Position numbers and translations under genes: made by a program. A stretch of 64,000 nt of DNA from Hormiphora californensis. Its lineage: Eukaryota > Animalia > Ctenophora. Positions 1 through 39,800 of the stretch are shown here, one piece after another. Position 1 is the first letter of the stretch. The number at the start of each line of letters is the position of its first letter. Below the pieces are notes generated by a model. The model ran no database searches. It was given only the letters and a program-made list of their open reading frames with translations, and had not been told where the DNA came from. The DNA lies in NCBI GenBank assembly GCA_020137815.1, contig CM035358.1, positions 7,874,001 through 7,938,000 on the forward strand, in the 5' to 3' direction.

Positions 1-403
1 CTGGAGGGCATCTCGCCTCGTAAAAGTCCAGCTGTGGGAGCGGGGTAGTTTTAGTTTGGATATTTCACACGACATATGTTGAGTAAGGGGGAAGAGTGTG
101 TCTTCCACCTTACTCAACAACACGGCATGGTTAAGGGTAGGAAAGAGCACGGGGAAATGGGAAAGGTGTGCAATGGAAACCATGAAGACAAAACATATTG
201 CATAACTAATATCCGGTGACCTCGAATTATCATACCTCGAATGAGTAATCTTCAGTGGCGATGGTGCCACTGGATTTCAACTTGCTGCACGAATTAAAGA
301 AAGTCTGATCAGTACTGATCTTGTTATCAATCTCATCCGCTAACTTCGTTACTTCGTTCGTTACCTCTGTGTAGTAACTCTGTATGTCAGAGTTCAGGTC
401 AAC
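1..403 (-). CDS. Downstream glypican-like exons, running off the left edge of the window
   Basis: Phase-0 exon 403-236 (ttcccag|VDLNSDIQSYYTEVTNEVTKLADEIDNKISTDQTFFNSCSKLKSSGTIATEDYSFE|gtatga) resembles the glypican helix ending in ...KVFQGCG. The next exon starts at 31 (cccacag|LDFYEARCPP). Its phase matches the donor at 5314. Confidence 0.6.
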
Positions 404-770
404 CTGGGAAGAGAGGTACAATTGTAGTTCATAATCATAGTTGTTGAGTAAGGGGTGGGAGAGGGTTCTTCTCCACCCCTTACGAAACAAGTTCATCTGA
501 GTTTATGATGAGATGGGCAGGATATTTATTGTGGTATTAGAGTGGTTAACCACCACCACCGTCACCCCATGAAGGGAATTCGCCTCGTGGGGTGACGCTG
601 CACCCTATACTACCACAACAATCAAAGTTACTATGGATAATGAGGATACCTAGTTGCCTCATGTTCGATCCAACTCCCCCCGGGTTAGGGTTTGAACAAA
701 ACATACTAAAGTATAGTGAATCGGGAAAATTGAGTTGTCTAAAAAAGACACAATGACCCCGTTTTGATAG

Positions 771-5314
<4,544 letters not shown>

Positions 5315-5450
5315 GTAGGTGTAAATGTTGTGCCCCAAATACCATATTTGGTAAAGTGTGTGTCACCATGGTAACCCCCCCCCCCCCAAGTGTAGTACTG
5401 CAAGTGCAGCTGTTTCAAACGTAGTAGTGCAAACAGTAGTTATTTTTTGA

Positions 5451-8400
5451 GATCACTATTTTGCAGTTTGGTGTATGTTTCGTCGTCAGTTCTCTGCCTT
5501 GTTTCACCGGGATAGGTTGTACATTTCTGTGTTTCGTGTATTGTATACTGTCTAGACACTGTCTAGGTCGGGACAGGTTGTACACTTCTTTGTTCGTGTG
5601 TTGTACATGGTCTTGTCTCTCTAGAACGGGATTTGTTGTACACAGCCTTGCTCCGGGTATGGTACACTGTCTGGTCGTCTTTTCTGTGTTGAACTTACTC
5701 CCGCAATCTCTTCATTCTCCCCATAAATTGCTAAATCAGAACACTTCCGTCTACATAGCAACACCCCCTTTCAGTGGCGAGTTATTTCAAAGTTCACTGC
5801 CGCTCAGACTCAGAGTCTGAGCCGCACACGCTTCCTCCTAATCCATTCTCTAGCTTGTATAACTTTGCGGCGGAGAGAACTCTTCCCATGAGATGCAGTG
5901 TCCTGTAATCTGTTCAGATCACTATTTTGCAGTTTGGTGTATGTTTCGTCGTCAGTTCTCTGCCTTGTTTCACCGGGATAGGTTGTACATTTCTGTGTTT
6001 CGTGTATTGTATACTGTCTAGACACTGTCTAGGTCGGGACAGGTTGTACACTTCTTTGTTCCGTGTGTTGTACATGGTCTTGTCTCTTCTAGAACGGGAT
6101 TGGTTGTACACAGCCTTGCTCCGGGTATGGTACACTGTCTGGTCGTCTTTTCTGTGTTGAACTACCTCCCGCCGTCTCTTCATCCTCCCCATCATTTGCT
6201 AAATCTGAACACCTCCGTCTCCATAGAAACACCCCCTTCAGTGGCGAGTTATTTCAAAGTTCACTGCCGCTCAGACTCAGAGTCTGAGCCGCACACGCTT
6301 CCTCCTACTCATTCTCTAGCTTGTATAACTTTGCGGCGGAGAGAACTCTTCCCATGAGATGCAGTGTCCTGTAATCTGTTCAGATCACTATTTTGCAGTT
6401 TGGTGTATGTTTCGTCGTCAGTTCTCTGCCTTGTTTCACCGGGATAGGTTGTACATTTCTGTGTTTCGTGTATTGTATACTGTCTAGACACTTGTCTAGG
6501 TCGGGACAGGTTGTACACTTCTTTGTTCCGTGTGTTGTACATGGTCTTGTCTCTTCTAGAACGGGATTGGTTGTACACAGCCTTGCTCCGGGTATGGTAC
6601 ACTGTCTGGTCGTCTTTTCTGTGTTGAACTTACTCCCGCAATCTCTTCATTCTCCCCATAAATTGCTAAATCAGAACACTTCCGTCTACATAGCAACACC
6701 CCCTTTCAGTGGCGAGTTATTTCAAAGTTCACTGCCGCTCAGACTCAGAGTCTGAGCCGCACACGCTTCCTCCTACTCATTCTCTAGCTTGTATAACTTT
6801 GCGGCGAGAGAACTCTTCCCATGAGATGCAGTGTCCTGGAATCTGTTCAGATCACTATTTTGCAGTTTAGTGTATGTTTGTCGTCACTTCTCGGCCTTGT
6901 TTTGACCGGGATAGGTTGTACATTTCTGTGTTTCGTGTATTGTATACTGTCTAGACACTTGTCTAGGTCGGGACAGGTTGTACACTTCTTTGTTCCGTGT
7001 GTTTTACATGTCTTGTCTCTTCTAGAACGGGATGGTTGTTACACAGCCTTGCTCCGGGTATGGTACACTGTCTGGTCGTCTTTTCTGTGTTGAACTTACT
7101 CCCGCAATCCTTCATTTCCCATAAATTGCTAAATCAGAACACTTCCGTCTACATAGCAACACCCCCTTTCAGTGGCGAGTATTTCAAAGTTCACTGCCGC
7201 TCAGACTCAGAGTCTGAGCCGCACACGCTTCTCCCTACTCCTTCTCTAGCTTGTATAACTTTGCGGCGGAGAGAACTCTTCCCATGAGATGCAGTGTCCT
7301 GTAATCTGTTCAGATCACTATTTTGCAGTTTGGTGTATGTTTCGTCGTCAGTTCTCTGCCTTGTTTCACCGGGATAGGTTGTACATTTCTGTGTTTCGTG
7401 TATTGTATACTGTCTAGACACTTGTCTAGGTCGGGACAGGTTGTACACTTCTTTGTTCCGTGTGTTGTACATGGTCTTGTCTCTTCTAGAACGGGATTGG
7501 TTGTACACAGCCTTGCTCCGGGTATGGTACACTGTCTGGTCGTCTTTTCTGTGTTGAACTTACTCCGCAATCTTTCATTTCTCCCATAAATTGCTAAATC
7601 AGAACACTTCCGTCTACATAGCAACACCCCCTTTCAGTGGCGAGTTATTTCAAAGTTCACTGCCGCTCAGACTCAGAGTCTGAGCCGCACACGCTTCCTC
7701 CTACTCATTCTCTAGCTTGTATAACTTTGCGGCGGAGAGAACTCTTCCCATGAGATGCAGTGTCCTGTAATCTGTTCAGATCACTATTTTGCAGTTTGGT
7801 GTATGTTTCGTCGTCAGTTCTCTGCCTTGTTTCACCGGGATAGGTTGTACATTTCTGTGTTTCGTGTATTGTATACTGTCTAGACACTTGTCTAGGTCGG
7901 GACAGGTTGTACACTTCTTTGTTCCGTGTGTTGTACATGGTCTTGTCTCTTCTAGAACGGGATTGGTTGTACACAGCCTTGCTCCGGTATGGTACACACT
8001 GTCTGGTCGCTTTTCTGTGTTGAACTTACTCCCGCAATCTCTTCATTCTCCCCATAAATTGCTAAATCAGAACACTTCCGTCTACATAGCAACACCCCCT
8101 TTCAGTGGCGAGTTATTTCAAAGTTCACTGCCGCTCAGACTCAGAGTCTGAGCCGCACACGCTTCCTCCTACTCATTCTCTAGCTTGTAAACTTTGCGGC
8201 GGAGAGAACTCTTCCCATGAGATGCAGTGTCCTGTAATCTGTTCAGATCACATTTTTGCAGTTGGGTGTATGTTTCGTCGTCAGTTCTCTGCTTGTTTCA
8301 CCGGGATAGGTTGTACATTTCGTGTTTCGTGTATTGTATACTGTCTAGACACTTGTCTAGGTCGGGACAGGTTGTACACTTCTTTGTTCCGTGTGTTGTA

Positions 8401-10345
8401 CATGGTCTGTCTCTTCTAGAACGGGATGGTTGTACACAGCCTTGCTCCGGGTATGGACACTGTCTGGTCGTCTTTTCTGTGTTGAACTTACTCCCGCAAT
8501 CTCTTCATTCTCCCCATAAATTGCTAAATCAGAACACTTCCGTCTACATAGCAACACCCCCTTTCAGTGGCGAGTTATTTCAAAGTTCACTGCCGCTCAG
8601 ACTCAGAGTCTGAGCCGCACACGCTTCCTCCTACTCATTCTCTAGCTTGTATAACTTTGCGGCGGAGAGAACTCTTCCCATGAGATGCAGTGTCCTGTAA
8701 TCTGTTCAGATCACTATTTTGCAGTTTAGTGTATGTTTGTCGTCACTTCTCGGCCTTGTTTTGAACGGGACAAGTTATACATTGCTGTGTTTCGTGTATT
8801 GTATACTGTCTAGACACTTGTCTAGGTCGGGACAGGTTGTACACTTTTTGTTCCGTGTGTTGTACATGGTCTTGTCTCTTCTAGAACGGATTGGTTGTAC
8901 ACAGCCTTGCTCCGGGTATGGTACACTGTCTGGTCGTCTTTTCGTGTGTGAACTTACTCCCGCAATCTCTTCATCTCTCCCCATAAATTGCTAAATCAGA
9001 ACACTTCCGTCTACATAGCAACACCCCCTTTCAGTGGCGAGTTATTTTCAAAGTTCACTGCCGCTCAGACTCAGAGTCTGAGCCGCACACGCTCCTCCTA
9101 CTCCTTCTCTAGCTCGTATAACTTTGCGGTGGAGAGAACTCTGCCCATGATATGCAGTGTCCTGGAAACGGTTCAAAACACTATTTTGCAGTTTAGTGTA
9201 TGTTTGTCGTCACTTCTCGGCCTTGTTTTGAACGGGACAAGTTATACATTGCTGTGTTTCGTGTATTGTATACTGTCTAGACACTTGTCTAGGTCGGGAC
9301 AGGTTGTACACTCCTTTGTTCCGTGTGTTGACATGGTCTTGTCTCTTCTAGAACGGGATTGGTGTGTACACAGCCTTGCTCCGGGTATGGTACACTGTCT
9401 GGTCGTCTTTTCTGTGTTGAACTTACTCCCGCAATCTTCATTCTCCCCATAAATTGCTAAATCAGAACACTTCCGTCTTACATAGCAAACCCCCTTTCAG
9501 TGGGAGTTATTTCAAAGTTCACTGCCGCTCAGACTCAGAGTCTGAGCCGCACACGCTTCCTCCTACTCATTCTCTAGCTTGTATAACTTGCGGCGGAGAG
9601 AACTCTTCCCATGAGATGCAGTGTCCTGAATCTGTTCAGATCACTATTTGCAGTTTGGTGTATGTTTCGTCGTCAGTTCTCTGCCTTGTTTCACCGGGAT
9701 AGGTTGTACAATTCTGTGTTCGTGTATTGTTACTGTCTAGACACTTGTCTAGGTCGGGACAGGTTGTACACTTCTTTGTTCCGGTGTTGTACATGGTCTT
9801 GTCTCTTCTAGAACGGGATTGTTGTACACAGCTTGCTCCGGGTATGGTACACTGTCTGGTCGTCTTTTCTGTGTTGAACTTACTCCCGCAATCTCTTCAT
9901 TCTCCCCATAAATGCTAAATCAGAACACTTCCGTCTACATAGCAACACCCCTTTCAGTGGCGAGTATTTCAAAGGTCACTGCCGCTCAGACTCAGAGTCT
10001 GAGCCGCACACGCTTCCTCCTACTCATTCTCTAGCTTGTATAACTTTGCGGCGGGAGAGAACTCTTCCCATGAGATGCAGTGTCCTGTAATCTGTTCAGA
10101 TCACTATTTTGCAGTTGGTGTATGTTTCGTCGTCAGTTCTCTGCCTTTGTTCACCGGGATAGGTTGTACATTTCTGTGTTTCGTGTATTGTATACTGTCT
10201 AGACACTTGTCTAGGTCGGGACAGGTTGTCACTTCTTTGTTCCGTGTGTTGTACATGGTCTTGTCTCTCTAGAACGGGATTGGTTGTACACAGCCTTGCT
10301 CCGGGTATGGTACACTGTCTGGTCGTCTTTTCTGTGTTGAACTAC
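5451..10345. repeat. ~466-bp tandem repeat array, ~10.5 copies
   Basis: Unit start gatcactattttgcagttt recurs at ~5451, 5917, 6383, 6850, 7313, 7779, 8245, 8709, 9176, 9639 and 10099. Each unit has internal ggttgtacac sub-repeats and a ctcagactcagagtctgag palindrome. Confidence 0.95.
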
Positions 10346-11664
10346 CTCCACCCCCCCTCCGCCCCACCCTCCCGCCCCCACCCCACCGCCTAAGTAGAGG
10401 ACTTTGTGAAACACGCCAGTACAGGGACAATCCTTGTGTTTTGGTGCACTAAGTCGCTTATCGCGTGTAACAACTCTCAATTGTTCTTATCTGTCCCACC
10501 CGACTTGTCCTATAGAACATCGTACACATTCTAGGGACGCTACAATCTGTCCCACCTCTTATTTGTATTTGATCGTTTTTGTTCATCTTGATCTCTACTG
10601 GAAGTGGAAATGGTACACCTCTCATCTGATCACCAACAACATCACGGTACCAATCAATAATCATACATCAAAAAGCTGTAAGTTCATCTGTCTGTATTGT
10701 CTGTTCATCTATTGTGTACCATTGATAATGATCCGGAGTAACCTTACCAATCAATAATTTACTTAGAGCTACTATAGACAGACTACCCCAGACCCAAGCT
10801 TGAGAAGTGTCCACTCGACGGACCGTCGTCGTAACAAACAAACAAAAGGCCTACCTGCACAGCCACCAAGCTTGAAAATGTTGCCCCCTAATTTGTCTTT
10901 TGCTTATTCGCAAGATAACTGCAATGTCCTCACGGGGCGGAGATGCGAAGAGTGCAACCGACCTTTAACCGTGGGGTCTGCGTAAGTGTCTTGCAAGTAC
11001 AATGACTGACTGACAACATGAATGCAATGATATCAACTGACCACAACACGATGACAGACGCTATGACGAGGTTGCAATGTCGTTCTGCCCTAACGGGCAG
11101 AGTTTGGCACGCTATAACCTATCTGTACCACCACCACCACCACAGTAGTTATTTATTCGCAGTCCTTAAATCGCCCCTCCTCTTTTTATACATCCTCCAA
11201 ATCAAAAAACAACTTACTGTGCCCACTAATGACCACAATTCGATCTATGAGTATGCAAAGTAGCCCCCCTCAGTACTAACTACTACACGTATGCAAAATA
11301 GCCTCCCCCAGTACTGTTACGGTCAATCGCCCTTTATATGTTGACAGTGCCGCCCTCCCCCCTACTATCGTACTACTTAGCATATGTATAATACTACTAC
11401 TTACTAACTGCCGCCCTACTATAACTCACCCCTCGCAGCTACTACCGATTTAACACCGTTCTGTCAAAGTGGAATAGCTCTGTACCTAAACTAACAACTC
11501 ATCACCAGTATCAAAAGACCCACTAATTCCTCCCACGGCCCACACACCAAATAAAGTTCCTCCTGTTTAAGGTACACACGAATAGTTCACTTCCCACCAA
11601 CAGTGCTCAATCAGGATCCCGAGAGCCGAATAACAAAGAGAAACAGGTTGCCTTTTTACCGTAC

Positions 11665-13875
11665 CTCAGGAAAAGGTTGATCACATTGCTGCCGGAGGTT
11701 CGCCCAGTCCCCTATCGATGGTGTGGTGGAGAGAGCCCTGTTACATGCCTCTGCACATGTCAGATTAACCCTCGTTGAGTAACAGCACTCCTTCAGATGG
11801 ACATAGTCTGATATACACGAATACAGGGCCACCTACAGGGGAGAGGGAAGGAGTGAATTCGTAGTCTGATATACACGAATATAGGGCCACCTACACAGGA
11901 GAGGGGGTGTTACTGAATTCGTAGTCTGATATACACGAATATAGGGCCACCTACACAGGAGAGGGGGTGTTACTGAATTCGATAAATGGGATTAGGGGTA
12001 TTATCACTATATCTCTCTGTAACTTTTAAGCTACTTAAATAACACACAGGGATATTTGATTTGAAGTATTGAAAGACTGGGGATTTTATTATATTTGTGT
12101 GTTCTGAATCACTGTTCTCTGTCAAAGGGGGGGGGGATGATCATGACTCTAATTCTAAATGACCACCCCCCCCCCCCCCCCCGGTGAATTGACCACACCA
12201 GTTACATTTCGCACCCCCCCCCCCCCTACTGGCCCCAGTTTCCTGCGGTGGACAACTTTCATAATAGCCTCTAAACCCCATCTGAAGCAGGGCTAGGGAT
12301 ATAATATTCTCACCAAAGTTATATCACCACTTGTAATATTCTAACCCTCCTTTAAATTTGCGGGGGGGGGGGGGGTTGAAACAGGGTCGAGCAAGGCAAG
12401 GCACAGCGTAAGCACTAGGTAACTCACCTCAATCTCTCTCTCACACTCACCTCAGTGGTTCTATTGCACTTCCCGTTAAAGTCAGAGAGGGGATGGGAGG
12501 TCTGACAAGCGCCCCCGCACTGTTGTGATACCGCCCTGTCGCAGCAGATAGGAACCCCTACTGGTAACCCATAGTTTGACCTGGTGACACACTTTACTAG
12601 TCTCTGCTGTACCTGGGGGGGGGAGATGTTACATTAGATAGAGAGGTGACACACTTTACTAATCTCTGCTGTATCTGGGGGGGGGGGGAGGTTATCATCT
12701 TTAGAAAGAGAGGTTATATAATTTCAGAAGAAGAGAGGTGATATGTCATATGGATATTACTTTAAGCCGCTATGAAGTTCAAGGTAGATAGATGATCTTA
12801 TGGATTATGGTGGTCACTGGAGAGATAGAGAGAAGCAGATGTGAAGACATGAGACTGGATCGAGAGATAGAGGTATTAAGGGAAGCAGATGTAGAGAGAG
12901 ATAGAGAGGTCTGAGGTGATGAGTAAATATAGAGACTTGAGGTTAGCTGAGAGGATTATAGAGCTGGATTATAACCCCGTCTTCTATAGAGCTGGATTAC
13001 TTATAACCCCGTCTTCTTCTATTATAACATATCATTGTGGTCTAGTCGGCATATTATCCCCCCTCCCCTCCTCCTCCCTTGTAACAACATTCAAAACAAA
13101 CACTGATCTTTTGTAATAATAGGGGGCTCTGTAGATAGAGGGGGCTCAGTAGAGAAAATATAGAGGGGCTCGACTTAGAGAAAATATAGGGGGCTAAATG
13201 GAGAAAAAATATGGGGGCTAAATGGAGAAATTTAAAAGTCTTCTTTTACAAAGTTAGGAAAGTATTTTAGTGAATTGGCTAATTATCTACTACCTGTTAA
13301 TTATCTACTAATAACCTACTAATTACCTGCTAACTATCTACTAATTACCTGTCGAGATGTAGCACAGGGGAAGAGAGTTGGTTTGAACTCTGTGATGTTC
13401 TCATCTGCAATCACTTCCTTGCAGTGTTCAAGGCAACTAGGGTCATCCTCAAGATGCATAGCGCAACATACTTCATCGATATAAAAATCTGGGAAGGGAG
13501 TTAGGGGTCACATAGCGCAACATACTTCATCGATATAAAAATCTGGGGAGGGAGTTAGGGGTCACATAGCACAACATACTTCATCGATATAAAAATCTGG
13601 GGAGGAGTAAAGCAGATTGTAGCAGATCACAGATGTAAAGGGGATGGGGTATAAAAGTCGTCCCCGATTGTAGACTGTGATAATCTCCCCTGGTATTATA
13701 ACGTACATGATGATAGATATTTAGGGGCTGACTGGGGATTGGGGGGGGGTCTCATGTTGTTTTTGAGACCCCCCTCCTCGGCTCACTTGAAATCATGACA
13801 GATCTCTGACTTACTAGCAACACATGTGAGAGGAAGGAAGAGAAGTATTATACAGAGGGAGCTGGTCCAGCTCAT
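11665..13875 (-). CDS. 5' exons of a secreted RECK-like protein: signal peptide plus three CC (cysteine-knot) domains
   Basis: Four phase-compatible GT-AG exons: 13875-13815 (MSWTSSLCIILLFLPLTCVA, signal peptide); 13488-13349 (FYIDEVCCAMHLEDDPSCLEHCKEVI...FPCATSRQ); 12612-12451 (VQQRLVKCVT...ICCDRAVSQQCGGACQ...KCNRTTE); 11832-11665 (VALYSCISDYVHLKECCYSTRVNLTCAEACNRAL...QQCDQPFPE). The CC-x(6-9)-C-x3-C...C...LxxC spacing matches RECK CC repeats. Not shown by the ORF track. Confidence 0.85.
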
Positions 13876-15417: not shown

Positions 15418-16754
15418 GATCGGAGAGCTCTCTCAGAGAGATAGTCGATTACGCCCGCCGGGACGCGTGGGGCGTCCGAGCGACGACCCCGATTGTGAGA
15501 GAAAGAAATAATATTAAAAAGGTTATTAGTTTTATCTTTTTGGTTTCATGTTTCACCCTGGTGAGCCTCGTTACGGTTTATGCACCAAGAGAGAAAAAAC
15601 GATTATACGAATAAATTTACTTTCTCTTGTCTATCTTCTCTCCCACTGTCCCCCCTTTCTCTCCCTCTCTCCACTCTCCCTCTCTTATTCTCCCATAAAA
15701 AGATAAAAATACAAATTATGCTAAACCAACTCCACCCTGACCAGGCCAAAATGACAAAAAATTCAAAACATCTGGATGAAGGATTCTTAATCCCCCGAGA
15801 ACGAATAGTTGTGACACTGCCATACCGATTTGGTAGCTCGCTATCGATGCTAGCACACGGTTTTCGGGTTACCGTGGTTGGTGACTTATAACCTGCATGC
15901 TCAACTCAGGTTCTTGGGTTATATCGTACAAATTCACCCATCTCCGAAAATAGAAAAATGAAGTGATTGGCGGAAATTACAAACAAGCATTCAACCCACA
16001 AGTATTTTCCCCAGAGTGATGAATTTTTCAAGTTTTACATTGCTTTAATTTGTCATTAAAAACAGTGTGACGTCATAACGTGACGTCATAATGTGACGAT
16101 ACATGTGACGTTGTATTGTACACATGTATCGTCACATTATGACGTCATAATAATGTGACGATACATGTGACGTTGTATTGTACATGGCTATCGCTGTGTT
16201 TACACATTGAAGCCCACGCAACCAGGCTAAGAGGTAGAGTCGAGAGGTAGAAAGTAGAGAGAAGAATGAGAGTGAGAGAGAGAGAAAGATAGAGGGAGAG
16301 AGAGAAAGTTATAGCTTTGTTTATAGCTCTGACCAATGATCTCACACGTACGAAAGTTGGAATCGACAAAATAATTTGCATTTGAAACTTATTATATCAA
16401 CTTAGGACACTTTGGTATTTTGCAGCTTTTGGTAGTTTGTCCTTGCTTTTGTATGATCCAGGGTTACATCATCTGATGATACAATCCTTCAATAATGTAA
16501 CATTGATACTAAAATTATAGAAGTTGAGGCTTTGCGACACTTGTGCTGAACTAGTGTAAGTTTGTGTGTGCATCTTTGTATTGCGGGGATATATATAAAA
16601 GATCCACACTCCCTTCTCTCTTTGTTAAATATTTGCCCTTGTGTTGTGTGTGCTGATCCATCATCATGGAAAGACCCAGCTAGTATGGTGTTGGAGCGGT
16701 TCTTCAAAAGGGTGGACAGTCGGGGCAGTAACATGGACCAGACCCCTGTAGTTG

Positions 16755-19700
16755 ATGAAAGTACTGCCAGATGAACCTACTTTGGGTGAGATGTCGGGAG
16801 ATTTGTCTTAGTTTTTCTAATTTTATTCGCTTAACTTGTCCTTTGTTATCACCTATTGTTCGTTAAAAGCCTGGAGCATATCTGTACGATTTTCGTTTTC
16901 AGAACTCAACGAGGCAACTCCGGGGACAGTCAGCGCCACAGCAACTCCAGATATGATTAAGAAACCAGAGGATATTGATGTGGATATCAACATGACATTA
17001 GTACACCGCTCACTCACATTACTTCTGGATAACAGGTATACGTGCTCCTTCATAAAACTTGTTACTTCTTCATAAATAAGAAGGAGCTCCTTCATAAAAC
17101 TTTTTGTAGGTTTGTGGAAGCGGAGGAGATTCTCAAGAGGCATTACGAAACTGACATGCATTTTGCACTTGGATACGGTGCCATGCTGACCTTTCAGGTA
17201 CAGATGAACATATCATGACGTATTTTTGCTCATTTCTCATACCGAGGTCTAACATCTACATGTGACATCGGGGTTCCGGTAAATCGAGGCCCGGTAAATC
17301 GGAGTCCGACTGTATGTTGTATTTATCTGTTGAACTAACTTTCTGACTATGACTGCTGCAGGCTATCATGACTCTTGATAAGAAAGAGATAGAAAAGGGT
17401 TACAAGATCTTGGAACGAGGTTTAGAGTTAACAGATAAAAGGAGACAAAAGAAAACCGACTATTTGAGAATGAGACCCCCGACTTATGAAGAGGTAATTA
17501 AATTAAATTAATTAATTAATTTTATCGAACCATTCCAGCTGAATTTATATTTCTAGTTATATCAAGTCCTCGTGTGTGTTTGAATATCATGGTGATATAT
17601 TGCGCCCCTATAGGTTGTTGCTGAACTGTTGTATGCTGAGACACTCCTACTGGACTCCCTTCTCACCTTCGCCCAAAGTGATTCCGTTATTGCGATGATC
17701 AAGGGAGCTGTAAAGGTAATACCAGGACATAATCAATCTCGAATCTCTTTCCATTTCTTTTATCATGTTTATAGTGTGTAAGAACAGTGGTCAGAGCTTT
17801 GGCCTAATAGGAAATATCACGATTATATATGATGTTACCAATAGCCACATTTAACCATCAACTATCATCAACTATCGACTATCGAGTCCTGAGTCCTATT
17901 GATGAGATTCCCGTCGACAAATGATATTACTCTCTCTGATCCGTAGGGCCGAACATCATATGGAATCTATAAGGATCTTTACAGCAAGTACATTGTACGT
18001 CCAGGGGATCCAGCTCAGAAACAACAACCAATCAAAGTCTCAAATGACTTTCTCAGCGGCATTCTCCTAGGATATGGGTGCTTTCAGATCATACTGGCGA
18101 TGGTTCCACCGGTAAGTTTAAACTATTTCTCGTCTGTCTGGTGGCTGGGTCAGATCCACGTGAGATATTATCTGATTGTTCAACCCCGTGTTTATTCAGA
18201 AACTATTGAAACTGCTGGAGTTGGTTGGTCTACAGGGTGACACACAGACTGGACTTGATGCGTTAGCAAAGGGGGTTGAACTGGATGGACTGAGATCACC
18301 CTTCTGTGCTCAGGTAAGGCATTTAAATATTGATCTGTGAAGAGCTACTAGTGCTCGAAAGTGTTACCTGGAGCTTCGACCATTTTGGTCACCCTGACCC
18401 ATACCCTGCCAACGATACTGGATACTATTTACTAATTATTAATTTACTAATTTACTAATTACTAACTTACTAATTACTTTCTCCAGGCAATAACAACGTA
18501 TAACACTGCCTTCAAATTCAACTTGGACCCCTACAACATAGACCTGTCTGTGGTGGATTCCCTGTGTGAAAAGTACCTTACCAGACATCCTAACTGCGTC
18601 TCATTTCACTTCTTTACCGGCCGGGCAGCTGTCCTGCGGAGAGATCTCGCGGGTGCTGCAGAAACCTTTGAAAAGTGTGTCAAGTTACAGGTGAGAGTGA
18701 CTGTTACTTACTTTTAACAAAGCTATGGAAAAGATGCCCTTTTTAGTGATCTCGATCTGTCGTACATAAGAAAGTGATTCACGAGCCCTAATTTTACTGT
18801 ATTTTATGATATGTAGACTGTAAATAAAGAGCTTTATACACCGCCTTACACACTACCCCACATGGACTACCCCACATAGAACGCTTCGTTGCCCCGTTAG
18901 ATATATCACTAACTCGTTAGATCTCACTCATTATATGTGTAAAACTTGGCTAAGCGCCAAACTTGTTTAATTACACACCCAAATAGAGAGGAATGAACAA
19001 CACATAAACCTTTGAATGAACTCCTTCTCGTTTACACAGCGTCAAATATCGACACAATCTCAATTAATATTCCCATAATAATAAGCTCAGTTCTAATCCC
19101 CCGGCCGCCAGATCACTCATGATAAACTCCTCTCCCCCAAATCACTCAGAATGTCCTACATTCCCCCCCCCCCCCCCCCCAAATCACTCAGAATGCGCTA
19201 ATACACCCCAAATCACTCAGAATGTCCTACATTCCCCCCAAATCACTCTGAAAGTCCCAAATCCCCGGCCAGAACGAGTGGATAACGATGCATCACACCT
19301 GCTGGTTCGAGCTCATGTGGATTGCAGCTATGCAACAAAAGTGGGCCGAAGCAGCGGATTATGCACAACGACTTTTTGGGGCGTCCAACTGGAGCAAAAC
19401 TTCCTATCTCTACCTCCTTGGTTCTTTCAGATACGCACAATATGTGGACTGTGATCCCTCACGCAAGTAATATATTTTCAAAATTAATCTCACTGCATTC
19501 AGTTTTAAATTGTTGCAGCTTGCTCCACCCTTTCTCAACAACTAAATTGATGTTATTCCCCACTTCCTTTGGGTCCCCTCTTTTCTTTCCTGAGCTAGTT
19601 AGGGATACCCCCTTCCCGATTAGGTACCATCAATCACTTCCTCTCAGGTACGCCAATGACCCGAACATAACGAACCTGTTTCGCGATGTAAAGGAGTATC

Positions 19701-21130
19701 AAATTAGAATCGCAGGGAAACGACTCCAGGTTGAGAAATACTGTGTCAGAAAAGCGAGGAGTTACCATAATCAAAACAATTTCCTTTTCTATCCGGCCAT
19801 CGAGGTAATAATCTAGTTGTTGCAACGATATTGTTGCCAACTGCCGAGTGACTTTTTTCCAGCAACTTTTTTAACCCTACACTAGCCTCCCCAACCTCCC
19901 TACCTTTATCACTTTATATAAAGTTGAATGACAAACTATCTTGTTTCCCTTTGTAAAGTTGAATTTATTTCAGGCGATGTTTGTATGGGGCATGTTTGTC
20001 TTGCTGGATAAGCAGATGACCAAGAAATTCATATCGCAGTGCCAAGAAAGATTGGAGCTGATAACCGATCATCAACTCAGTCCTGATGATAAAGGGCTAG
20101 GGCATCTTATGGTGGTAAGAAGGAGAGAGAGAGAGAGGGGGGAGGGAGATATAGAGATAGAGAGAAGGAGATAGAGAGAGAGGGGGAGGGAGAGATGGAG
20201 AACAGGGCGAAAGAAAGATATTCATGAAGTGGCAGAAAGGGGGTGACAGAGGTAGAGAGAGGTAGAGAAAGAGAGAGAGAGGTAGAGAGAAAATGATAAA
20301 TAGGCCTGGGAGCAACTCCAAGGCGGAAACGTACTATTTTATTGTGTCTCTCCCCCTTACTCTCTCCCCTCCACAGGGCGCATTATGGAAACACTGTTAT
20401 CTACTTGAGTCTGCAGAGGTTCAAGAAGAGAGAGAAATGTTCCTCGAAAAGTCAGAGGAATCACTCAAAAAATCCCTTTCATTCGGTAAACATTCCACTA
20501 CTGTCTTCCAGTGTCCCTGAGGTGGATAATTCAGACGAACTAACTTCACAGCTAAAGTCGGATTTTTTGAAACTGTCACCCCCCTGGGTATTTTCAAATT
20601 TCGTAAATGACCATAAATCCGGTTCCTGACGAGATAGAGACTTGAAATTTGGAGGTTACGAAGATCTTGCTAAGTTCTTCCGAACCTCTTCAAGTCTCTA
20701 TCTCATCAGGAACCGGAGATATGGCGAATTTTGTTATTTCAGGGGGGTGACAGTTTCAAAAAATCCGACTTTACATTGCATTCTGTAAATCTTGGATTTC
20801 TTTTTTTTAAAGCAAATCCCAAAATACCAATTTTTTCAGAGAAACAAATAAAGAAAGATCACTTTGTCATTGCGTGGTCAAATTACGAGCTAGCGGAGCT
20901 ATATTGGCTGAAAAAGGATGACAAGCAAGCTAGTGAGCGGTTGAAGGCCTGTAAGAAAGTGTCATCTAAAGTGAAGTATTCTCTGGAGAGTCGGATTATG
21001 TTTAAGGTTGGTAAAATAACTTCCAAACTTATCCGGAAATGAAGTAGTAATTGTTTCATTAATCAATTTTAATTTTCAGGTACATAATCTTCAGGAGAGA
21101 GTGAAGGAGTTGCAGAAGGAACGGTCTTGA
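16755..21130 (+). CDS. TTC39: TTC39 / Iml2-family TPR protein, 14 exons
   Basis: Exons 16755-16785, 16903-17035, 17110-17197, 17362-17493, 17614-17715, 17947-18111, 18200-18313, 18487-18690, 19273-19466, 19648-19804, 19974-20114, 20377-20485, 20840-21006, 21080-21130. Motifs: LLLDNRFVEAEEIL, HFALGYG, LLELVGLQGD, HHTCWFELMW, SNWSKTSYLYL, IAGKRLQVEKYCVRKA, YSLESRIMFKVH. The true start could be the ATG at ~16685 if a base is missing. Confidence 0.9.
20553..20773. mobile_element. Palindromic MITE in a TTC39 intron
   Basis: Terminal inverted repeats (TIRs) taaagtcggattttttgaaactgtcaccccc / gggggtgacagtttcaaaaaatccgacttta, plus inner arms ccggttcctga..gagacttgaa / ttcaagtctc..tcaggaaccgg. Confidence 0.85.
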
Positions 21131-24411: not shown

Positions 24412-27400
24412 TCAAAAGAACTGACTATTAGTTCTGGTGGTGGGCTGTTTCTCCAAGAAAGCTTTATATCTCTTCTTATCGTTCTCAGTTACTGGTTCTT
24501 CAATGCTGTAACTGGAAAAGTACATCCCTTCTTCTGTCAGCACTTCAGCCTTTAGAATATCGTCCTGAAAATGGGGGGGGGGGGGTTAGGGAGTTAGGGA
24601 GCGAGAGTGGGGTTAGTTGAGTTTAGTTGTGGGGATTAGGGATTAGGGAGTCATGTAGGATGGAAAAACAAGATGAAGGATATCACAGGGTATCAGTTGC
24701 ATGTGCATTGTGCAAGAAAGGTTTGCACACACATTGCTACGGAACTGTCTAACTTTGTGCAGACAGCAAATTGTGCAAACTCTTCTAAGACATAGTGGGT
24801 ACCATTATCCATCCATCTCTCTCTCCATCTCCTTCTCACTCCCAGCTTGTTCATTCTTATCTCACAAACTGTTATACAATCAACGATGAAACATTTGTTA
24901 CCTGCAGACTTCCATCCGCCTGCAAATCACAGACACCAGCTTGGAACTTTTGGAATTCCTCTAAATGTCTGGCAAGCTCCCAGCACTTTTCAAAGTTTAT
25001 CAAATCGGTGTTATCAATCTGGAGAGATGAGGTATGTTAGAACACTTTGCAGTGGTTCCCCTAAATTATTAAGCTGTACCTAGACCCAACAAGAGCCACA
25101 GTACAGCAGAATTATACACGTAGGTAATCTCTTTTTGAAAACTTGCTCTTTCTCTTTGTTACACGTAGGTACTATAAACACGCCAAAACTAAACGCTTAG
25201 TGGTTGACTGTGTATAAGGCCCAAATAAGCTTCAGTCAAGCTTCACAGCATAGGTATTATGTATCACTTACCCTTGTTTTCTTGATCTCATTAATAGTAT
25301 GAATATCCTTCACAAGTATCGTAAAGAATGGTATCACACAGGTGTGCTGTTCACTTGCATTCCGCAGTGCAGTCCTGTACGTCTTGAAGTTCTCACTCGG
25401 ACTCATCTGTTTTTCAAGTGATTGAAGGTGTTCCACTTTACTTCTGTCTAGTTTATCACGTAACTTGTGTAGTCGTGTTATCGAACTCTGAAACAGGGAT
25501 TTAACATCTTTTAGAGATGGCCAGTGATAATTAATGTTAGTACACAGAGGTTTAAAAAATTAGTGATAAAGTAACCAGCCAGCTGTCAGAACTCCAAATG
25601 AAGCTATCTAAAATCAGGACGAAAGCAATGCTATGAAATTATTCAAACCTGTAACATATTAATATGTTACATGTTTAGTTACGTACCTGATTGAGACCAG
25701 CTAGAATTGCCATAGCAGAGTTAAAGTTTCCCTGACTGAAACACGCAACTGCAGTGTCCATATAGTATTCCATGGTCAGGTTTCTAGCTGCCCCCAACTC
25801 AGGGGATAGGACTTCAGTAGCAACAAAGTGGGAGAGGTGGTTGAACCTGTAGGAATGAGGGTGATACACAGGTGGTTAAACATGCAAGAATGAGGGGTTA
25901 ACTAGGTGGTTTTAAACCTGTATTAGGAATGAGAAAGAAGGTGTGAGATTCGTGAATATGAAGGCTTGTGTAGTCACACTCACCAGTTAACATATTTCTC
26001 CACATTTCCCCACGCGGTTGCAGGATCTTTATCTTTTGAAACATCTTTACCCAACATTGAGATAATTTCCCCGAAAGAGATATTATTAAGAAAATCAATT
26101 TCAATATGGGTTAACTGGGCAGCAATCAACTCTGGCTTTATATCCCTGACCTGAAATGATGGTAGTGTAAATTGAGACCCAAAACTGCATACCAAAGATA
26201 AAGCTGTTGAGAGACAGGGTCGCAAAGATAAATTATTTTTGGCAAACTTACAAAATCAAGTTTTTCCAGACAATCCGATTTAGGAACTTTCTTCTTGGAT
26301 TTCACATCCACCAATCTGTTATCAAGTAACCTAATCAACCTATCACATCCTCGAGAACATGATGGATCAAGATTCTTACAGAATCTCAGTGCTTCATGAA
26401 GTTTGTCCATCATGGACTGTCGGATGAAATCATTTGGAAATGTTTCCACCCATTGGAGGAGGAAGAGGGCAAGGTGGGGAGCTACGGTTGCTGTTTCTGG
26501 TAAATCAGGGTTCGCTTGCTCAATCTGACATCGCTCTAAAACCTGGGAAAAGCATGAGGTAATCATTACAACATGGTTAAACAATGTCAAACAAATGTTA
26601 AACTGTGCTAAAGTAGGTTAAAGACTGTATGTTTAATGAGATCACGCCTACCTGGGTAAGGACCTCGACAGGATCAACAAAAATTCTGCACGAAAGGAGA
26701 AAGGCAAAGAGGTAATCCTCCGGGGGATAGTACTCAGATGTTGGGGTCAAATGCCTGAGGAGGTGTTATTATTTGTTAGTCGATTGATTTGTAGTTCGTA
26801 CACAAATTAAAAGGAAGGGAAACAAATAATTACAAAAATAAGGGGAGGGGCCGGGTGGGGTGGGGAGGATGTATTTACAAGATTTTACAAGATTTTACAA
26901 GACTAGAGTACCCGTTTGCTGGGAACCCGTGACCTGGTAAATGGTAATTTGTGTTTGATTTTTAAAAGATAATTTGTTTGTTCCTTAGAGCAATGACAGT
27001 GGTCATCCGACATATTCCGACGTGAAATTCGACCTGAATCTCGACCTTGAATGAGGCTCGCATCAGAGAGATGTGCCGCAGTAAGCAAATGATGTCGCGC
27101 TTCAACTCTTCTCTCTCGTTAGTCTTTGTATCTCTCTCACTACGAATGCGCGCCTCATTCCAGGTCGAGATTCAGGTCGAATTTCACGTCGAGGTATGGC
27201 AATTATGTCGGATGACCACTGTCAGAGTCTCATAGTAGGAGCGGTTAGATCTGCACGTGCAGAAAGTCGCGCGCCACCCTAATCTCAGGTTACTCTCACG
27301 GCTTCATTTCGCATCCAATCCAAAAGTGACCTTCATCAAACATGTAGATCTCCTCAAGGAGAAGGGAAAATTTGCGGGACATTTCTTGATTGGATGCGAC

Positions 27401-30969: not shown

Positions 30970-33905
30970 CTAATTCTCTGCTAGCATGCTCTTAATACTG
31001 GGGCTGCACAGATCGAATGGCTTGTGTCCCGTCTGAAAGAAAGGGGAGGTGTTTTCATAACATTTAACACGGTCTACATATAATTTGGGGAGCTTCTAGA
31101 TCTTATGGAACAAGAAGAAGGGGCTAGCTAGCCCGGGTTAGGAGAGGATAGGGAAAGGTTGTTCATGTAACAATTTGACCTAATCTTTATGACGTCACGA
31201 GACTTCTGATGACGTCACCATACTTCTGATGACGTGATAATCACGCCACACACACGGTGTGACAGTATGGTGGATGTGCGCGCGCGCCATGTAGGTGTTT
31301 AAAACGCTCTGCGCCACGCACTCTCCACACGAGCGGAAAGGCGTGGGCTATGTAGACCCCTCGCGCGCGCGCGCTGACTCGGAGTGTCGACCGAACAAGA
31401 GCCGACACTTTTCTCTGCGAAACCAAATAAAGTTTAATAAATTGTCAAATAAATTATAAAAGTAGGGATATCTACCATAAAGGTAGCGGGGAAATAAGGT
31501 GGAATAAAACTTGTTGATGTGGGTGGTAACCCTTTAGTAACCAGTGGTTACTATGGTAACAACTTGGGTCTTGGTGATGTTGTGGTTACTAACGTTACCT
31601 TATTGACTAGGTTCATGTTGGCGCCCCGTTCCACTAACAAATTAATACTTCTTATGTGGTTCTTTTCACAAGCTAGATGCCTGAAAGAGAGAGAGGAATA
31701 GTTTACAAATATGTAGATCATAGGTATGTTATGATAGTATGATTCATATATGGTCATATCATCAATATATCCCCAATATATTCAATATATACAGCTTGCC
31801 TTCTAGAATAACCTAGAAGATAGAACTACCTAGAACTACCACTGGTATAGTCTACCACAGCTGTGTGATTCTAGAAGAAAGGGAAAGAAAACATTACTCG
31901 AGGGGGAGGGGGTGTTATTCGGGGGGGGGGGGGGGGGGGGGGGGAGGTGCACTACTCAGGGGCCGGGGGGGGGGGGGGGCATTACTCGGGGGGCCGGGGG
32001 GACATTACTCGAGGGGGAGGGTACATTACTCGGGGACCGGGGGGGGGGGGGGAGGGGGGCGTTATTCGGGGCGGGGGTGCATTACTCGGGGGGCCGGGGG
32101 TGCATTACTCGGGGGCCGGGGTGAGGGAGACCGGGGAGGGGGGTCGGGTGAGGGGGGTCCTGGGGTGCATTACTTACAGTGATGTATTACCGTCACAGTC
32201 TTTGCAGTCAATGTGTCCACCAGCATCTAGTAACATCTTTAATATCTGGTAATGATCCCTGTACGGAGGGGGTGGGTTATGTGGGGCGGGTGGGGGGAGG
32301 GGGAGGGGGTTATGTGGTGCAGAGAATAAACGAGAGATCCATCATGGATTACTAAAAAGAAAGTAAAAGATGAAGTAATGTGTTGTTATATTACTAATAA
32401 CATGTTTGTGTAACACACTAACTTTGCGGCAGCTTTGTGCATGGGTGATGTCCGTTGCTGATTTCCGATATTTGGATCTCCTCCTGCTGCTATCAAGACT
32501 TCACAAATCTGAGAAGAAAGAGGAGGGCGATATAAGGGTGATAGAGGAGGGGAGGGTAGGGGGTAGAATGAGGGGTGATAGAGGGGAGGGGGTAGAATGA
32601 GGGGATGGGGAGCTGGGAGAGGGGTGATAGATAGAGGAGGGTGATAGTGGGGTGGCAGATAAAGGGGGAGCCTGGAGAGAAGTGGTAGAGCGCCGAGCGG
32701 TGATAGAGGGGAGAGGGGTGGCAGAGGGGAATCGGGAGAGGGGTGGCAGAGGGGAGGGCCGAGGGGGTAGAATGAGGGGTGATAGAGCTGATTCTAATTC
32801 CTGATTTTAAATACCTCTATCCAATTCTTGGAGGCTGTGTAGAATAACGCTGTTTGGTCGAGATTGTTGATGGCATTAACATCGCAGAACCCCGTTTGAA
32901 GAAGCAGTACTGCAATATGGAGGTGACCACTGGAGGTAGCAATGTGAAGAGGTGTAGATTGGGCCTGAAATGGGGGGGGGGGTAGAACAAACAAACAAAC
33001 AAATAAAACAACAAGCAAGTGAACAAACAAACAAGCAGACAAACAAACAAACAAACAAACAAACAAACAAACAAACAAACAAACAAACAAAACAATAAGC
33101 AAGCAAACAAACAAACAAACAAACAAACAAAACAACAAGCAAGCAAGCAAGCAAACAAACAAACAATTAGACAAACAAACAAAACAAAACAAAACAAACA
33201 AACAAACAAAACAAACAAACAGACTCATTACTCACATCATCAGGGGTGTTTATATCAACACATCCCTCGATAGCCATGGAACAGTTTAAGATGAATTGAA
33301 CCACATCTCTGTGTCCTCCAGAGCACGCCCAATGAAGGGGCTGCCGACAATTCTGAAATAGAAGGTCAGTTTTCAATCTCCCTCACTCTCTCTCTCCCTC
33401 TCTATCACTCTCTCCCATTCTCATTGCGAGATCAGAGACAGAAAGACACCCACGCAACACTCTCTAACATCTCTCATTCACTCACTCAGGCAACACTAAT
33501 GGTTAATTGCTCACTTCAAAACACTTTTTATTTTTATATTTTAATGAAAAAGAAAAACAAAGACAGCTTTATGATTTTAATGCAAGTATCAGCTCAAACC
33601 ATCAACCTCTATCTCCCGGTCTTTATCTCTCTCCCAATTATTCTACATTTCTCTTCTCCTCGCAAGTTCCACCCACTCTTTTTCTCTGTGCTTTTTCTCT
33701 CGCTCCCTCTCTCTCTTTCTGTCTCTGATCTCACTCTGTCTCTCCTTCTGTCTCTGATCTCTCTCACTCTGGCTCGCTTTCTGTCTCTAATCTCTCTCTC
33801 TCACTCTGTCTCTCTTTCTGTCTCTGATCTCTCTCACTCTGTCTCTCTTTCTGTCTCTGATCTCTCTCACTCTCTCGCTCTCTTCCCCATCTCTCTCCCT
33901 CCCCC

Positions 33906-36889: not shown

Positions 36890-39800
36890 CTACAGGCCCT
36901 TTCTACTCCTAAGTGGCCGATTAAACAACCAATTATCTCCGTCCTTATGGAATAGTCTTTGCTCATGAACCTCCCCAGTCTCCTCTCTCTGCCTCCTCAA
37001 AAACCTCTGATGTTCCTCAATCGCAAACTTCTCACTGCTCGCTGCATCAACATTATTCTCTGCGAGTGCCTTGGTAACATGCCTCCAGTGCCGTCTACTC
37101 TCCCACTCCTCCTGTCTTGATATTGGTAGACACTGCTTCTTAATGATCGGTATCGCATGGATATCCACGAAGACCTCCTTCTGCTGTCCCTCGAACTCTG
37201 CATACATTATGTTGTTCCACTCCCCGCTGACTTTACAGAAGGGTTTACTGGCTGCCACGTGACCAATAGTCCCAGTAATCTGATGTTTTCCACCCCCGTA
37301 GAAGGGTTTAGTAAGGAACGTGATCTCCGCCTGGTACCCAGTCTGGGGACATTTGATCTCACACTTTCCACCTAGTTCCACCCAGGGCCTCATTAGAATG
37401 TTCCGACCGTATCCGTTGGGAAATGTCACGTGATACTCCTCCCCGTGATCCAAGCAGGATAATACCGTGTCCCCTGCCATCTGAACCCCAATGGACAGTC
37501 CCAGGAATTTAGATTTCGTCCAGATAGAGGCATTCACCTCAATATTACTGTCTGGATGCTCAACATAGAATGCTGATATGGGTGGATGGTGGGAGACCTG
37601 TTCTGCGACAAACACAAGACTACTGGAGCTCTTGGCCCAGGGACAAGGTCCCTCCTTACGATTGGACTCTCGGAACTACCATCAGGCATGCCCGGCACAT
37701 CGAAATAACAGGAGAAACTCTCACCGAGGACTGGGTTGTATGGTTTTTTAGCCACACTACCCCTCCTACCAGCGTGGAATGCAGAGAGGTACCACTTGAC
37801 CGCAGCGACTATCCTGTCTTTGGGTGTGGGCGCTTTGGAGATACTGACGAATATGTCAGGGTGGGCTAGGAACTCGGCGTACATTTCCAGGAGGGACCGC
37901 TTTTCAAGGATGAATGTTGGAAGGGGAATCCTGGTTAGGTCCATACCGATACGAACCTAGGTGATAGGGAGGGTAAAGGGAGAGAGGGGGAGATGGAGAG
38001 AGAGGGAGGGGAGGGAGTGTGAGAGAGAGCGATCGGTGATAGGGAGGTAGGGAGGGAAGAGAATGATCTAGATATTACTGCACCTGGCGCGGCTAACCCT
38101 CCACAAAGCCTACACTTGAATCAATAGGGGGGGGGGGGGCTGGTGTGGTACCGCATGTAAAGTAACACATGTACTGTGTAAAGGGGAACCAAGTGTATCA
38201 CACCTACCTGACTGACAAGGTGGGTTATGACACTACTATTTCCACTATCAATCACAATTTCATCATCGTCGTCTTTTCCATAAAACTGATTGAACTCGTC
38301 CAACTCTCTAGCGCCCTCCGCCTGAGAAGGTCAGTGAGTAGTGAGTAGAGTGAGTAGAGTGATTAGTGACTAGTGACTAGTGAGTAGAGTGAGTAGAGTG
38401 AGTAGTGACTAGTGACTAGTGAGTAGAGTGAGTAGAGTGAGTAGTGACTAGTGAGTAGTGAGTAGGAGGGACCCTCTCAGAGGACACATGGGATTTAGAG
38501 CCCGGTAAATGGGCGCCTGGTAGGTGAAGAAATAATCGTCTGATGTGCCGCGGGTAGGGATTCTATTAACATAATAATTCTAGGTTCTCACAGTAGGAAC
38601 CTAGAAAATTCCAATCACAAAACGGAATTGAATTCAGGTTGAAGGTGTCACAGTGTGATCCTATAAAACTTATAAAACGGAATTACGACAAATAAAAGAA
38701 ACACGTTTCCAGCGGAATGGCATAATAAAATGGGTAGGAGACTGGAGAAGGAAAGAATGGGCCGGGGCAAGGTAGGCTGGGATTGGGTCATGGTGAGAAC
38801 ATAGAATAGAAGGTCTAGAAAATTCCAATCAAAGTAACGGAATTCAGCTACAAAAAAGAAACAAGTAGCACAATGAGCCCCAGTGCGGAGAATGCCCGGA
38901 TAACTAATGAGATTTAGGTTCGAGCCCATATATTATGACTTATATGGCTTGAGAAACCTATATATTTTCAAACTGCATTTATAATGAAATACGGGTCTCG
39001 CCATCTCAATATATATTGAAATACCCCCCCCCCCCCGCCATACTACTGCCAACATAGTTAGGGGGACGATATATCATAATTATAAATGTAGGTTTTAATA
39101 TCCATTCCCCTGCCGAGGTCTATGGCCTGCAGCACTATTCATGTGTAGTCCCCTCTCTTTCCTACTTTGTAAGAGACATACGGTGGCCCCTCTCTTTTAG
39201 ATAATATACGTGTATGTAGGCCCCAGCTTCCTACTTTTTTCAAGGAGACGTGGACTGGACATTGGCCCAAATATGTCCACGTGATGTTATTATATGGCTT
39301 CTCTAGAGAAAACCCATATTTTGGAACATATTATGGAATATATATATGTCGACCTTCCGGGATGAGAAAGAGAGAGAGAAGGGTTCACTTTCTTCCCCTC
39401 TTTCTCAACCTCACTCTCTCTCTTTCTCAACCTCACTCTCTCCTCTTAACTTCAGTCCTCACTTATGTTGTAAACTTCGACGTTTCGACCAATTATGTGG
39501 TCATGAAATTACCCCTCATCTCGAGCTCCCGGAGCGTATTAGGGATGACTTCGTAACCAACCCAATTATGTGGTACAGAGATAACGACCCTTCTATGGCC
39601 TTCAAATTAGTGGCATTCTACTACTACCCTAGTTATACTGCTATAGGGGAGAACGAGCAGGCCGATATATTTTTCAGATAGAGATGAATTCTGATCAACT
39701 GACTAACTACCCTGGTCCTCATAATTTGACAACTATGAACTACTAACATGTAGCATGGGGGGGAGTGGTGTGGTGTAGGTAGTCAGGTAAGTTACTAACC

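Follow-up and report, generated by a model that had tools for sequence, protein, structure and literature searches.

Neighboring RECK-like CC repeats and a very divergent glypican in the ctenophore Hormiphora californensis, with glypican exons divided over both strands

In a 64,000-nucleotide stretch of the genome of the comb jelly Hormiphora californensis (C9:7874001-7938000, hereafter the window), we found exons for a signal peptide and three six-cysteine CC repeats of the type known from RECK and, close to them, the exons of a very divergent glypican. The CC exons lie on the minus strand and the glypican exons are divided between the strands, a division that is best explained as one gene cut by an inversion of 5-11 kb. 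Since the CC exons and the glypican exons at 3119-5314 (plus strand) lie on opposite strands, a single transcript of both parts is impossible in the region as assembled. The first-pass annotation of this stretch, which had proposed one protein made of both modules, left this consequence undrawn. A single RECK-CC/glypican protein is possible only with the inversion undone, and one chimeric gene is a reading that we favor tentatively, at somewhat less than an even chance.

RECK and glypicans are tethered modulators of Wnt signaling in bilaterians, and the origin of the Wnt co-receptor toolkit is a question of early animal evolution. To our knowledge, an architecture that joins CC repeats to a glypican is known from no animal, and bilaterians keep the two modules in separate genes. 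If the modules do form one protein, the locus holds a new domain architecture joining two Wnt-modulator modules. On a cautious reading, the locus shows a comb jelly with RECK-type CC repeats but no other part of RECK, with a very divergent glypican, and with a local inversion that breaks a gene model, which is of note to users of the assembly.

Searches were run exon by exon. Genome scans covered the H. californensis assembly (110.7 Mb, 45 contigs), and Pfam matches were judged against cut-offs of 27 bits for RECK-like_N (PF22961), 27 bits for CC4_RECK (PF23332), and 26.4 bits for Glypican (PF01153). The glypican references were paralogues from the same genome (L005, L024, L001, L003, and L004) and a ctenophore glypican hidden Markov model (HMM). 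Codon usage was scored as log-odds with a training set of about 2000 codons; these scores are too noisy for short exons, and many noncoding open reading frames (ORFs) scored above 10.

RECK-like CC exons on the minus strand

Four minus-strand exons between 13875 and 11665, all with AG/GT borders, encode a signal peptide and three CC repeats:

13875-13815, minus strand: RECK-like exon 1, with ATG and signal peptide (MSWTSSLCIILLFLPLTCVA); donor A/gtaagt, one nucleotide carried out
13488-13349, minus strand: RECK-like exon 2, CC repeat 1 (FYIDEVCCAMHLEDDPSCLEHC...PCATSRQ), ending in phase 0; no Pfam match on its own
12612-12451, minus strand: RECK-like exon 3, last cysteine (Cys) of CC1 and CC repeat 2, no nucleotide carried out; Pfam RECK-like_N
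11832-11665, minus strand: RECK-like exon 4, last Cys of CC2 and CC repeat 3, ending ...QQCDQPFPE/gtacgg in phase 0

In exons 3 and 4, the sixth Cys of the preceding repeat comes 5-7 residues after the exon start, and at the end of exon 4 the third repeat still lacks its sixth Cys. Our exon reading, with its AG/GT borders, agrees here with the first-pass annotation, which had described a signal peptide and CC1 to CC3 ending in phase 0 without the last Cys of CC3.

Both Pfam and a second species support these exons. Exon 3 reached RECK-like_N at 27.1 bits, a borderline pass of the 27-bit cut-off (28.8 bits in the genome scan), and the CC exons were the only locus in the genome above that cut-off. 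Exon 4 matched CC4_RECK at 20 bits, below the cut-off of 27, and a DB module at 19.4 bits. A full HMMER search with exon 4 returned an orthologous ORF of 71 amino acids (P0006, on an ENA contig of 114,635 bp) that is 55% identical (E = 2.5e-18). The similarity ends at the same point in both sequences, PFP[DE]/V; P0006 reads PFPD and then V-S, which would fit a GTAAGT donor that the ORF caller read through. Two other matches of the same search were repeats and were set aside. The CC exon is present once in the genome. Because of the Pfam match and the conservation in P0006, we regard the CC exons as real and conserved.

Exons 3 and 4 and a profile of four rows were also searched by sequence against the PDB, and none retrieved a RECK chain. 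An AlphaFold model of exon 4, which represents one exon and not a whole domain, was a four-helix piece with a mean predicted local distance difference test (pLDDT) score of 66.8, and Foldseek found nothing in the PDB below E = 4.

What the locus shares with RECK is a signal peptide followed by tandem six-Cys repeats (CC-x7-9-C-x3-C-x12-17-C-x10-12-C) that reach RECK-like_N; it differs in having only three CC repeats, with no CC4 match above cut-off and no frizzled-like (FZ) or Kazal domain at or linked to the locus. The whole-genome scan for CC4_RECK gave no match, although the control in that scan also gave none. FZ_RECK (PF23298) gave nothing at the locus and weak matches of at most 20.5 bits on other chromosomes, and of 34 Kazal_2 matches genome-wide none lay near C9:7.85-7.94 Mb. 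These scans agree with the earlier observation that RECK Kazal and later CC exons are missing here. As read from its sequence, the CC gene is a CC-only relative and not a canonical RECK.

We also noted tandem copies of an acceptor together with the first 20-30 exon bases in front of the 5' ends of three exons (13457-13605, 11804-11981, and 3709-3762). The unit is 54 bp in 2.8 copies at RECK-like exon 2 and 60 bp in 3.0 copies at exon 4, with a looser upstream copy at the glypican exon at 3763. At RECK-like exons 2 and 4, the upstream copies run into stop codons and the last copy alone is productive.

Glypican exons on both strands

Glypican-type exons were found on the plus strand at 3119-3177, 3408-3501, 3763-3881, and 5172-5314, and on the minus strand at 403-236, at 31 to -104, and from about -903 onward, where negative positions lie to the left of the window:

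3119-3177, plus strand: probable glypican exon (GNRHLGRPDLDKIHTAAAI), two nucleotides carried in and one out; good splice sites and phase chain; by eye resembles 'QRPFADL' of L005
3408-3501, plus strand: probable glypican exon with Cys 5 (ALKAGVGNDVSDKCADMLFFELQPLKDAQE), placed by the phase chain
3763-3881, plus strand: glypican exon with Cys 6 (...LPDLTEECYIGAVRGG), in phase; z = 6.1 against L005 positions 157-187
5172-5314, plus strand: Cys-rich glypican exon (KFGGCNLCLKETESSQPCKMLCRNILSGCLKG...), ending in phase 0
403-236, minus strand: probable next glypican exon (VDLNSD...FFNSCSKL...), starting in phase 0 after a strong acceptor
31 to -104 (1-31 within the window), minus strand: glypican exon with Cys 13 and Cys 14 (GLLRGEMPSSQLDSSWLCTYVFSGVSEVNCWNRT..., ...WLCTYVFSGVSEVNCWN...); z = 4.7-4.8 against the C...CWNG motif of L001b
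about 903 bases left of the window, minus strand: next glypican exon (FTKEGQGQNPEVPG...), in phase, with GQGQNPEVP/NPE; z = 3.8 against P0003

The exon at 5172-5314 carries the clearest signal. Its sole Pfam match was Glypican, at 13.7 bits over profile positions 240-270, below the 26.4-bit cut-off, and it was the top match of the ctenophore glypican HMM among 3894 ORFs (E = 8.8e-5). It was also similar to paralogue L024 (E = 1.6e-6), its closest relative, and to L005 (z = 9.1), and it contains the central block CxxC...PC...C...GC with the spacing of the family (CNLCLKETESSQPCKMLCRNILSGCL). The L005 positions matched by 3763-3881 lie directly upstream of those matched by 5172-5314. Thus the clear glypican exons of the first-pass annotation are confirmed, 5172-5314 by Pfam, L024, and the HMM, and 3763-3881 by L005.

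Phase and cysteine spacing helped to place other pieces. From Cys to Cys, the exon at 3408-3501 and the next exon are 47 residues apart, compared with 50 in L005, and Cys 11 and Cys 12 are separated across the 5314/403 junction by 56 residues, compared with 54 in L005, with phase 0 on both sides. The exon at 403-236 had no significant similarity in our searches; its codon score in this frame was far above that of the other five. Overall, the pieces are successive, nonoverlapping, and collinear in family coordinates, are mostly in phase, and jointly span Cys 5 to Cys 14. Like GPC1-6, Dally, Dlp, and the paralogues L005, L024, L001, L003, and L004, they show the CxxC...PC...C...GC block, a helical stretch to Cys 12, and the C...CWN and GQxxNPE motifs in family order and with family spacing. 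They differ in their strong divergence (13.7 versus 26.4 bits), in the failure to find Cys 1-4, and in lying on both strands.

Broader searches added little at this locus. In the whole-genome scan with Pfam Glypican, the window was absent from the scored matches, and the exons were located by hand. Searches of the window by tblastn and phmmer with the glypican paralogues of the genome recovered 5172-5314 only; a paralogue match at 39179-39268 was rejected as chance. An alignment search that included the window exons found no orthologue of this glypican. Among the paralogues, L005 (on C5) is a glypican encoded by a single exon; its orthologues are 46-50% identical to it, and one eukprot protein reaches 95%. 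As the query of a word-index protein search, L005 returned its own orthologues only. L024 is a multi-exon glypican (G000:C2:2752239-2755358) whose N-terminal exon reads ...GGICYRDSNTTKFVPTCCSFDREMAL. A metagenome-scan match (L027) was rejected as a short pattern matched by chance on a bacterial contig.

Both ends of the glypican are incomplete. No exon with Cys 1-4 (C...CP..CC) turned up, either within the window or across 30 kb of left flank. Scanning for an ATG and signal-peptide exon, a crude scan that covered 975-3119 and the window plus flank, likewise gave none, as the first-pass annotation had stated. We note that, with about 65 residues of the N lobe and Cys 1-4 missing, unseen exons may lie between 949 and 3119. 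At the other end, the last recognized ORF stops after ...SNISLMLSTHTSSFCHSILASPYSQFFQII, with no serine-glycine run, a weakly hydrophobic tail, and no clear glycosylphosphatidylinositol (GPI) signal; further exons may exist. Left of the window, where the first-pass annotation had suggested looking for these two features, the glypican exons with Cys 13, Cys 14, and NPE continue.

Two further sequences lie in or near the glypican. Between the exons ending at 3881 and starting at 5172, a proline-rich, CCACC-rich repeat of 112-bp units with long ORFs on both strands (3928-4640) is probably intronic low-complexity DNA. The other, to the left of the window by about 6.1-6.2 kb (L013, 3780-3938, plus strand), is a Cys-rich ORF (...CGEGVTCQELPPNCPGIKVPGMCCPVCGKC...) that recalls a VWC/IGFBP-type module and has no Pfam match.

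A probable inverted block

If one inversion divided the glypican gene, its left breakpoint lies within 404 to about 899 and its right breakpoint within 5315-11650. Neither is marked by inverted repeats or footprints above chance. The window contains no N bases, and the assembly contains no second copy of the junction region. No recognized exon shows visible decay; each remains open and retains its splice signals. Because every exon is open with usable splice sites, we interpret the inversion as an artefact of assembly or haplotype, or else as a very young variant; a fixed inversion that breaks the gene is no more likely than an artefact or a haplotype variant. The assembly combines two haplotypes in a wtdbg2 composite that was scaffolded with HiRise and gap-closed; the source animal has 3.2% heterozygosity, and heterozygous inversions are known in it (PMC8527503).

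Three kinds of repeated sequence lie in this part of the window:

5450-10343, strand not assigned: tandem array of 466 bp in 10.5 copies, inside whichever intron contains the right-hand breakpoint, between the plus-strand glypican exons and exon 4

The copies of this array are 95% identical and contain a 62-bp sub-repeat, and its plus strand is T-rich with an AT skew of about -0.3. An 11-mer, AAGGTTACTCC, lies at 882-892 on the plus strand, before the acceptor at 900, and its reverse complement lies at 10735-10745, following a GGTAAGG site 930 bases downstream of exon 4. This pair could be a footprint of the inversion, but chance alone would give one match of this kind. Copies of a hairpin-like element, about 50 bp long (GTTGAGTAAGGGG...CCCCTTAC), lie at 441-492 and 76-122 and flank the exon at 403-236. 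The copy at 441-492 recurs at 81-90% identity on C1, C3, C7, and C13 and looks like a miniature mobile element.

A possible junction between the CC repeats and the glypican

Two plus-strand sequences bear on how the modules might be joined:

771-949, plus strand: junction exon of the first-pass annotation, in another frame than the exon at 900 (...LCVRR...VPEGYSSAELCPVLPPQ...); unsupported as an exon of either module
900-949, plus strand: candidate exon 5, acceptor ttactcctctgcag at 899/900, starting AAC TCT GTC CCG TAC TGC..., peptide NSVPYCLHNEYSHFSN, two nucleotides carried out

In the junction originally proposed, exon 4 splices to an acceptor at 771 and, with one base restored, reads QEAxLCVRR, in which the Cys closes CC3 and the following peptide (VPEGYSSAELCP...) opens the glypican N terminus. 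The ORF at 743-982 is indeed open for 80 codons, with an AG acceptor at 770/771, and to the eye its C...GF...VP...LCP loosely recalls a glypican N terminus. Read in phase 0, however, the sequence from 771 is CAA GAG GCA CCC TCT GTG TGA, which reaches a stop after six codons (QEAPSV-stop). The open frame would have to receive one base from the preceding exon, and exon 4 passes none on; this frame then ends at 949 in phase 0, while the exon at 3119 needs two carried-in bases, so that a further frame shift would be required. The peptide had no Pfam match, no significant similarity to the glypican N termini compared, and no CC after its CP, and the donor of 771-949, GTACAT, is weak (score -0.7). 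The model would need an inversion as well as base corrections in a pilon-polished assembly. The junction at 771 is therefore unsupported, and we consider this exact model very improbable.

We obtained a different candidate by scanning for acceptors in phase 0 with a Cys shortly after them. The phase of the exon at 900-949 matches exon 4 on one side and 3119 on the other, and this exon supplies a Cys after five residues, as exon 4 does, which makes the Cys count even and places the fifth and sixth Cys of CC3 11 residues apart, compared with 12 and 10 in the other repeats. Undoing the inversion gives an uninterrupted frame that starts with the ATG at 13875, passes through exons 1 to 4, 900-949, 3119, 3408, 3763, and 5172, and reaches 403 across nine junctions.

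On the minus strand from 11664 to 1869, nothing else qualified as a fifth CC exon. Minus-strand candidates at 11060, 11562, and elsewhere were rejected on codon score and missing donors, the codon score being unfavorable at 11060. A plus-strand candidate at 10915-10981 (NCNVLTGRRCEEC) had no similarity and a flat codon score and was also rejected.

One gene or two

In the one-gene reading, the signal peptide and three CC repeats (13875-11665, minus strand) would join the linker exon at 900-949, which would provide the sixth Cys of CC3. The linker would lead into the glypican core, which spans Cys 5 to Cys 14 plus the NPE motif and is encoded on the plus strand at 3119-5314 and then on the minus strand from 403 past the window edge, and the middle block, from about 404-899 to within 5315-11650, would be inverted in the assembly. 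The product, by analogy, may be a secreted or membrane-tethered modulator of Wnt-type ligands. We favor this reading on circumstantial support: no other CC 3' exon, no glypican start exon, and no glypican N-terminal Cys region was found. We infer a single transcript for the CC and glypican parts and a functional state in which the block is not inverted. The more specific proposal, in which three CC repeats take the place of the N-terminal Cys region in a glypican core, all within one cell-surface or secreted protein, and the inversion is an assembly or haplotype artefact, is possible but doubtful.

Several observations weigh against one gene. The exon at 900 was picked for its phase and early Cys, which leaves the phase match at 3119, a one-in-three chance, as its independent support; in likeness to the starts of CC exons it ranked 8th of 1358 candidate acceptors, and its GTACAT donor is weak. 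Left unspliced, it reads into a TAA at 972-974 and would end a CC-only protein of 200 residues. On the glypican side, the exon-by-exon Pfam scores are below cut-off, Cys 1-4 and about 65 N-lobe residues, including helix 1, were not found, and the donor at 236 does not fit the phase of the exon at 31, while the in-phase donor at 271 is weak. The breakpoints bear no mark of repeat or footprint. The earlier claim of a single protein thus stands in that both modules are real, and falls in its junction; a fusion is impossible as assembled and, with the inversion undone, has somewhat less than an even chance.

A rival reading is two neighboring genes of the same original orientation, both cut by one inversion: a small secreted protein with three complete CC repeats that ends in plus-strand 900-974 (NSVPYCLHNEYSHFSNKYMFHLLR-stop) and a divergent glypican with unrecognized or remote 5' exons. 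Reading through to the TAA makes the weak donor unnecessary and keeps the even Cys count and the spacing of 11 between the fifth and sixth Cys, compared with 10 and 12. RECK and glypicans occupy separate genes across the animals studied, and the paralogues L005 and L024 have N termini of their own. Spliced-leader trans-splicing is common in this genome (PMC8527503), which frees a downstream gene from needing its own promoter. However, neither an ATG and signal-peptide exon nor a CP..CC exon for such a glypican appeared in 975-3119 or in the window plus flank, and the phase match from 949 to 3119 would be a one-in-three coincidence. We judge two genes somewhat unlikely. Less likely still is a rearranged relic, in which the inversion would be real and fixed, the CC gene cut after exon 4, the glypican a headless core spread over two strands, and neither of them the source of a functional full-length product in this species. 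The lack of N bases and of a second junction copy, the missing N lobe, and the phase conflict from 236 to 31 with the best splice sites would all suit a relic, and inversions are frequent in the species (PMC8527503). A relic is harder to reconcile with recognized exons that all remain open between AG/GT borders, with phases that agree at nine junctions, and with an exon 4 that is 55% identical in another species.

A nested C-type lectin gene

A minus-strand ORF of 235 codons (1261-1965) is part of neither module. It belongs to a separate two-exon lectin gene at 2055-1258, between 949 and 3119:

2055-2007, minus strand: lectin exon 1, with ATG and signal peptide (MFEVLLFVFTLGSSQN); one nucleotide carried out, in phase with exon 2
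1868-1258, minus strand: lectin exon 2, a sushi-like region and a C-type lectin domain to the stop; Pfam Lectin_C, E = 2.5e-12

A word-index search found orthologous ORF fragments from other species (P0009 and P0010) that are 60-65% identical. A CC gene that continues downstream into the lectin exon was considered and rejected, because the lectin has a stop of its own and a separate first exon with ATG and signal peptide. Nested intronic genes occur in 1654 host genes of H. californensis (PMC8527503), and the lectin resembles these in being a complete two-exon gene between exons of a larger model. It differs in that it currently lies on the strand of the CC exons and would become antisense with the inversion undone, and its intronic status depends on the host model. 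In the one-gene reading, it would sit on the opposite strand within one intron of the host gene.

Neighboring features

Other genes in the window were recognized by eye from their ORFs. These were a TTC39-like gene at 16500-21000 (plus strand), a RasGEF-like N-terminal region at 25200-26700 (minus strand), ankyrin-repeat exons at 31500-33400 (minus strand), and exons of an oxysterol-binding-protein relative at 36890-37960 (minus strand). A retrotransposon lies at 53.6-56.8 kb of the window.

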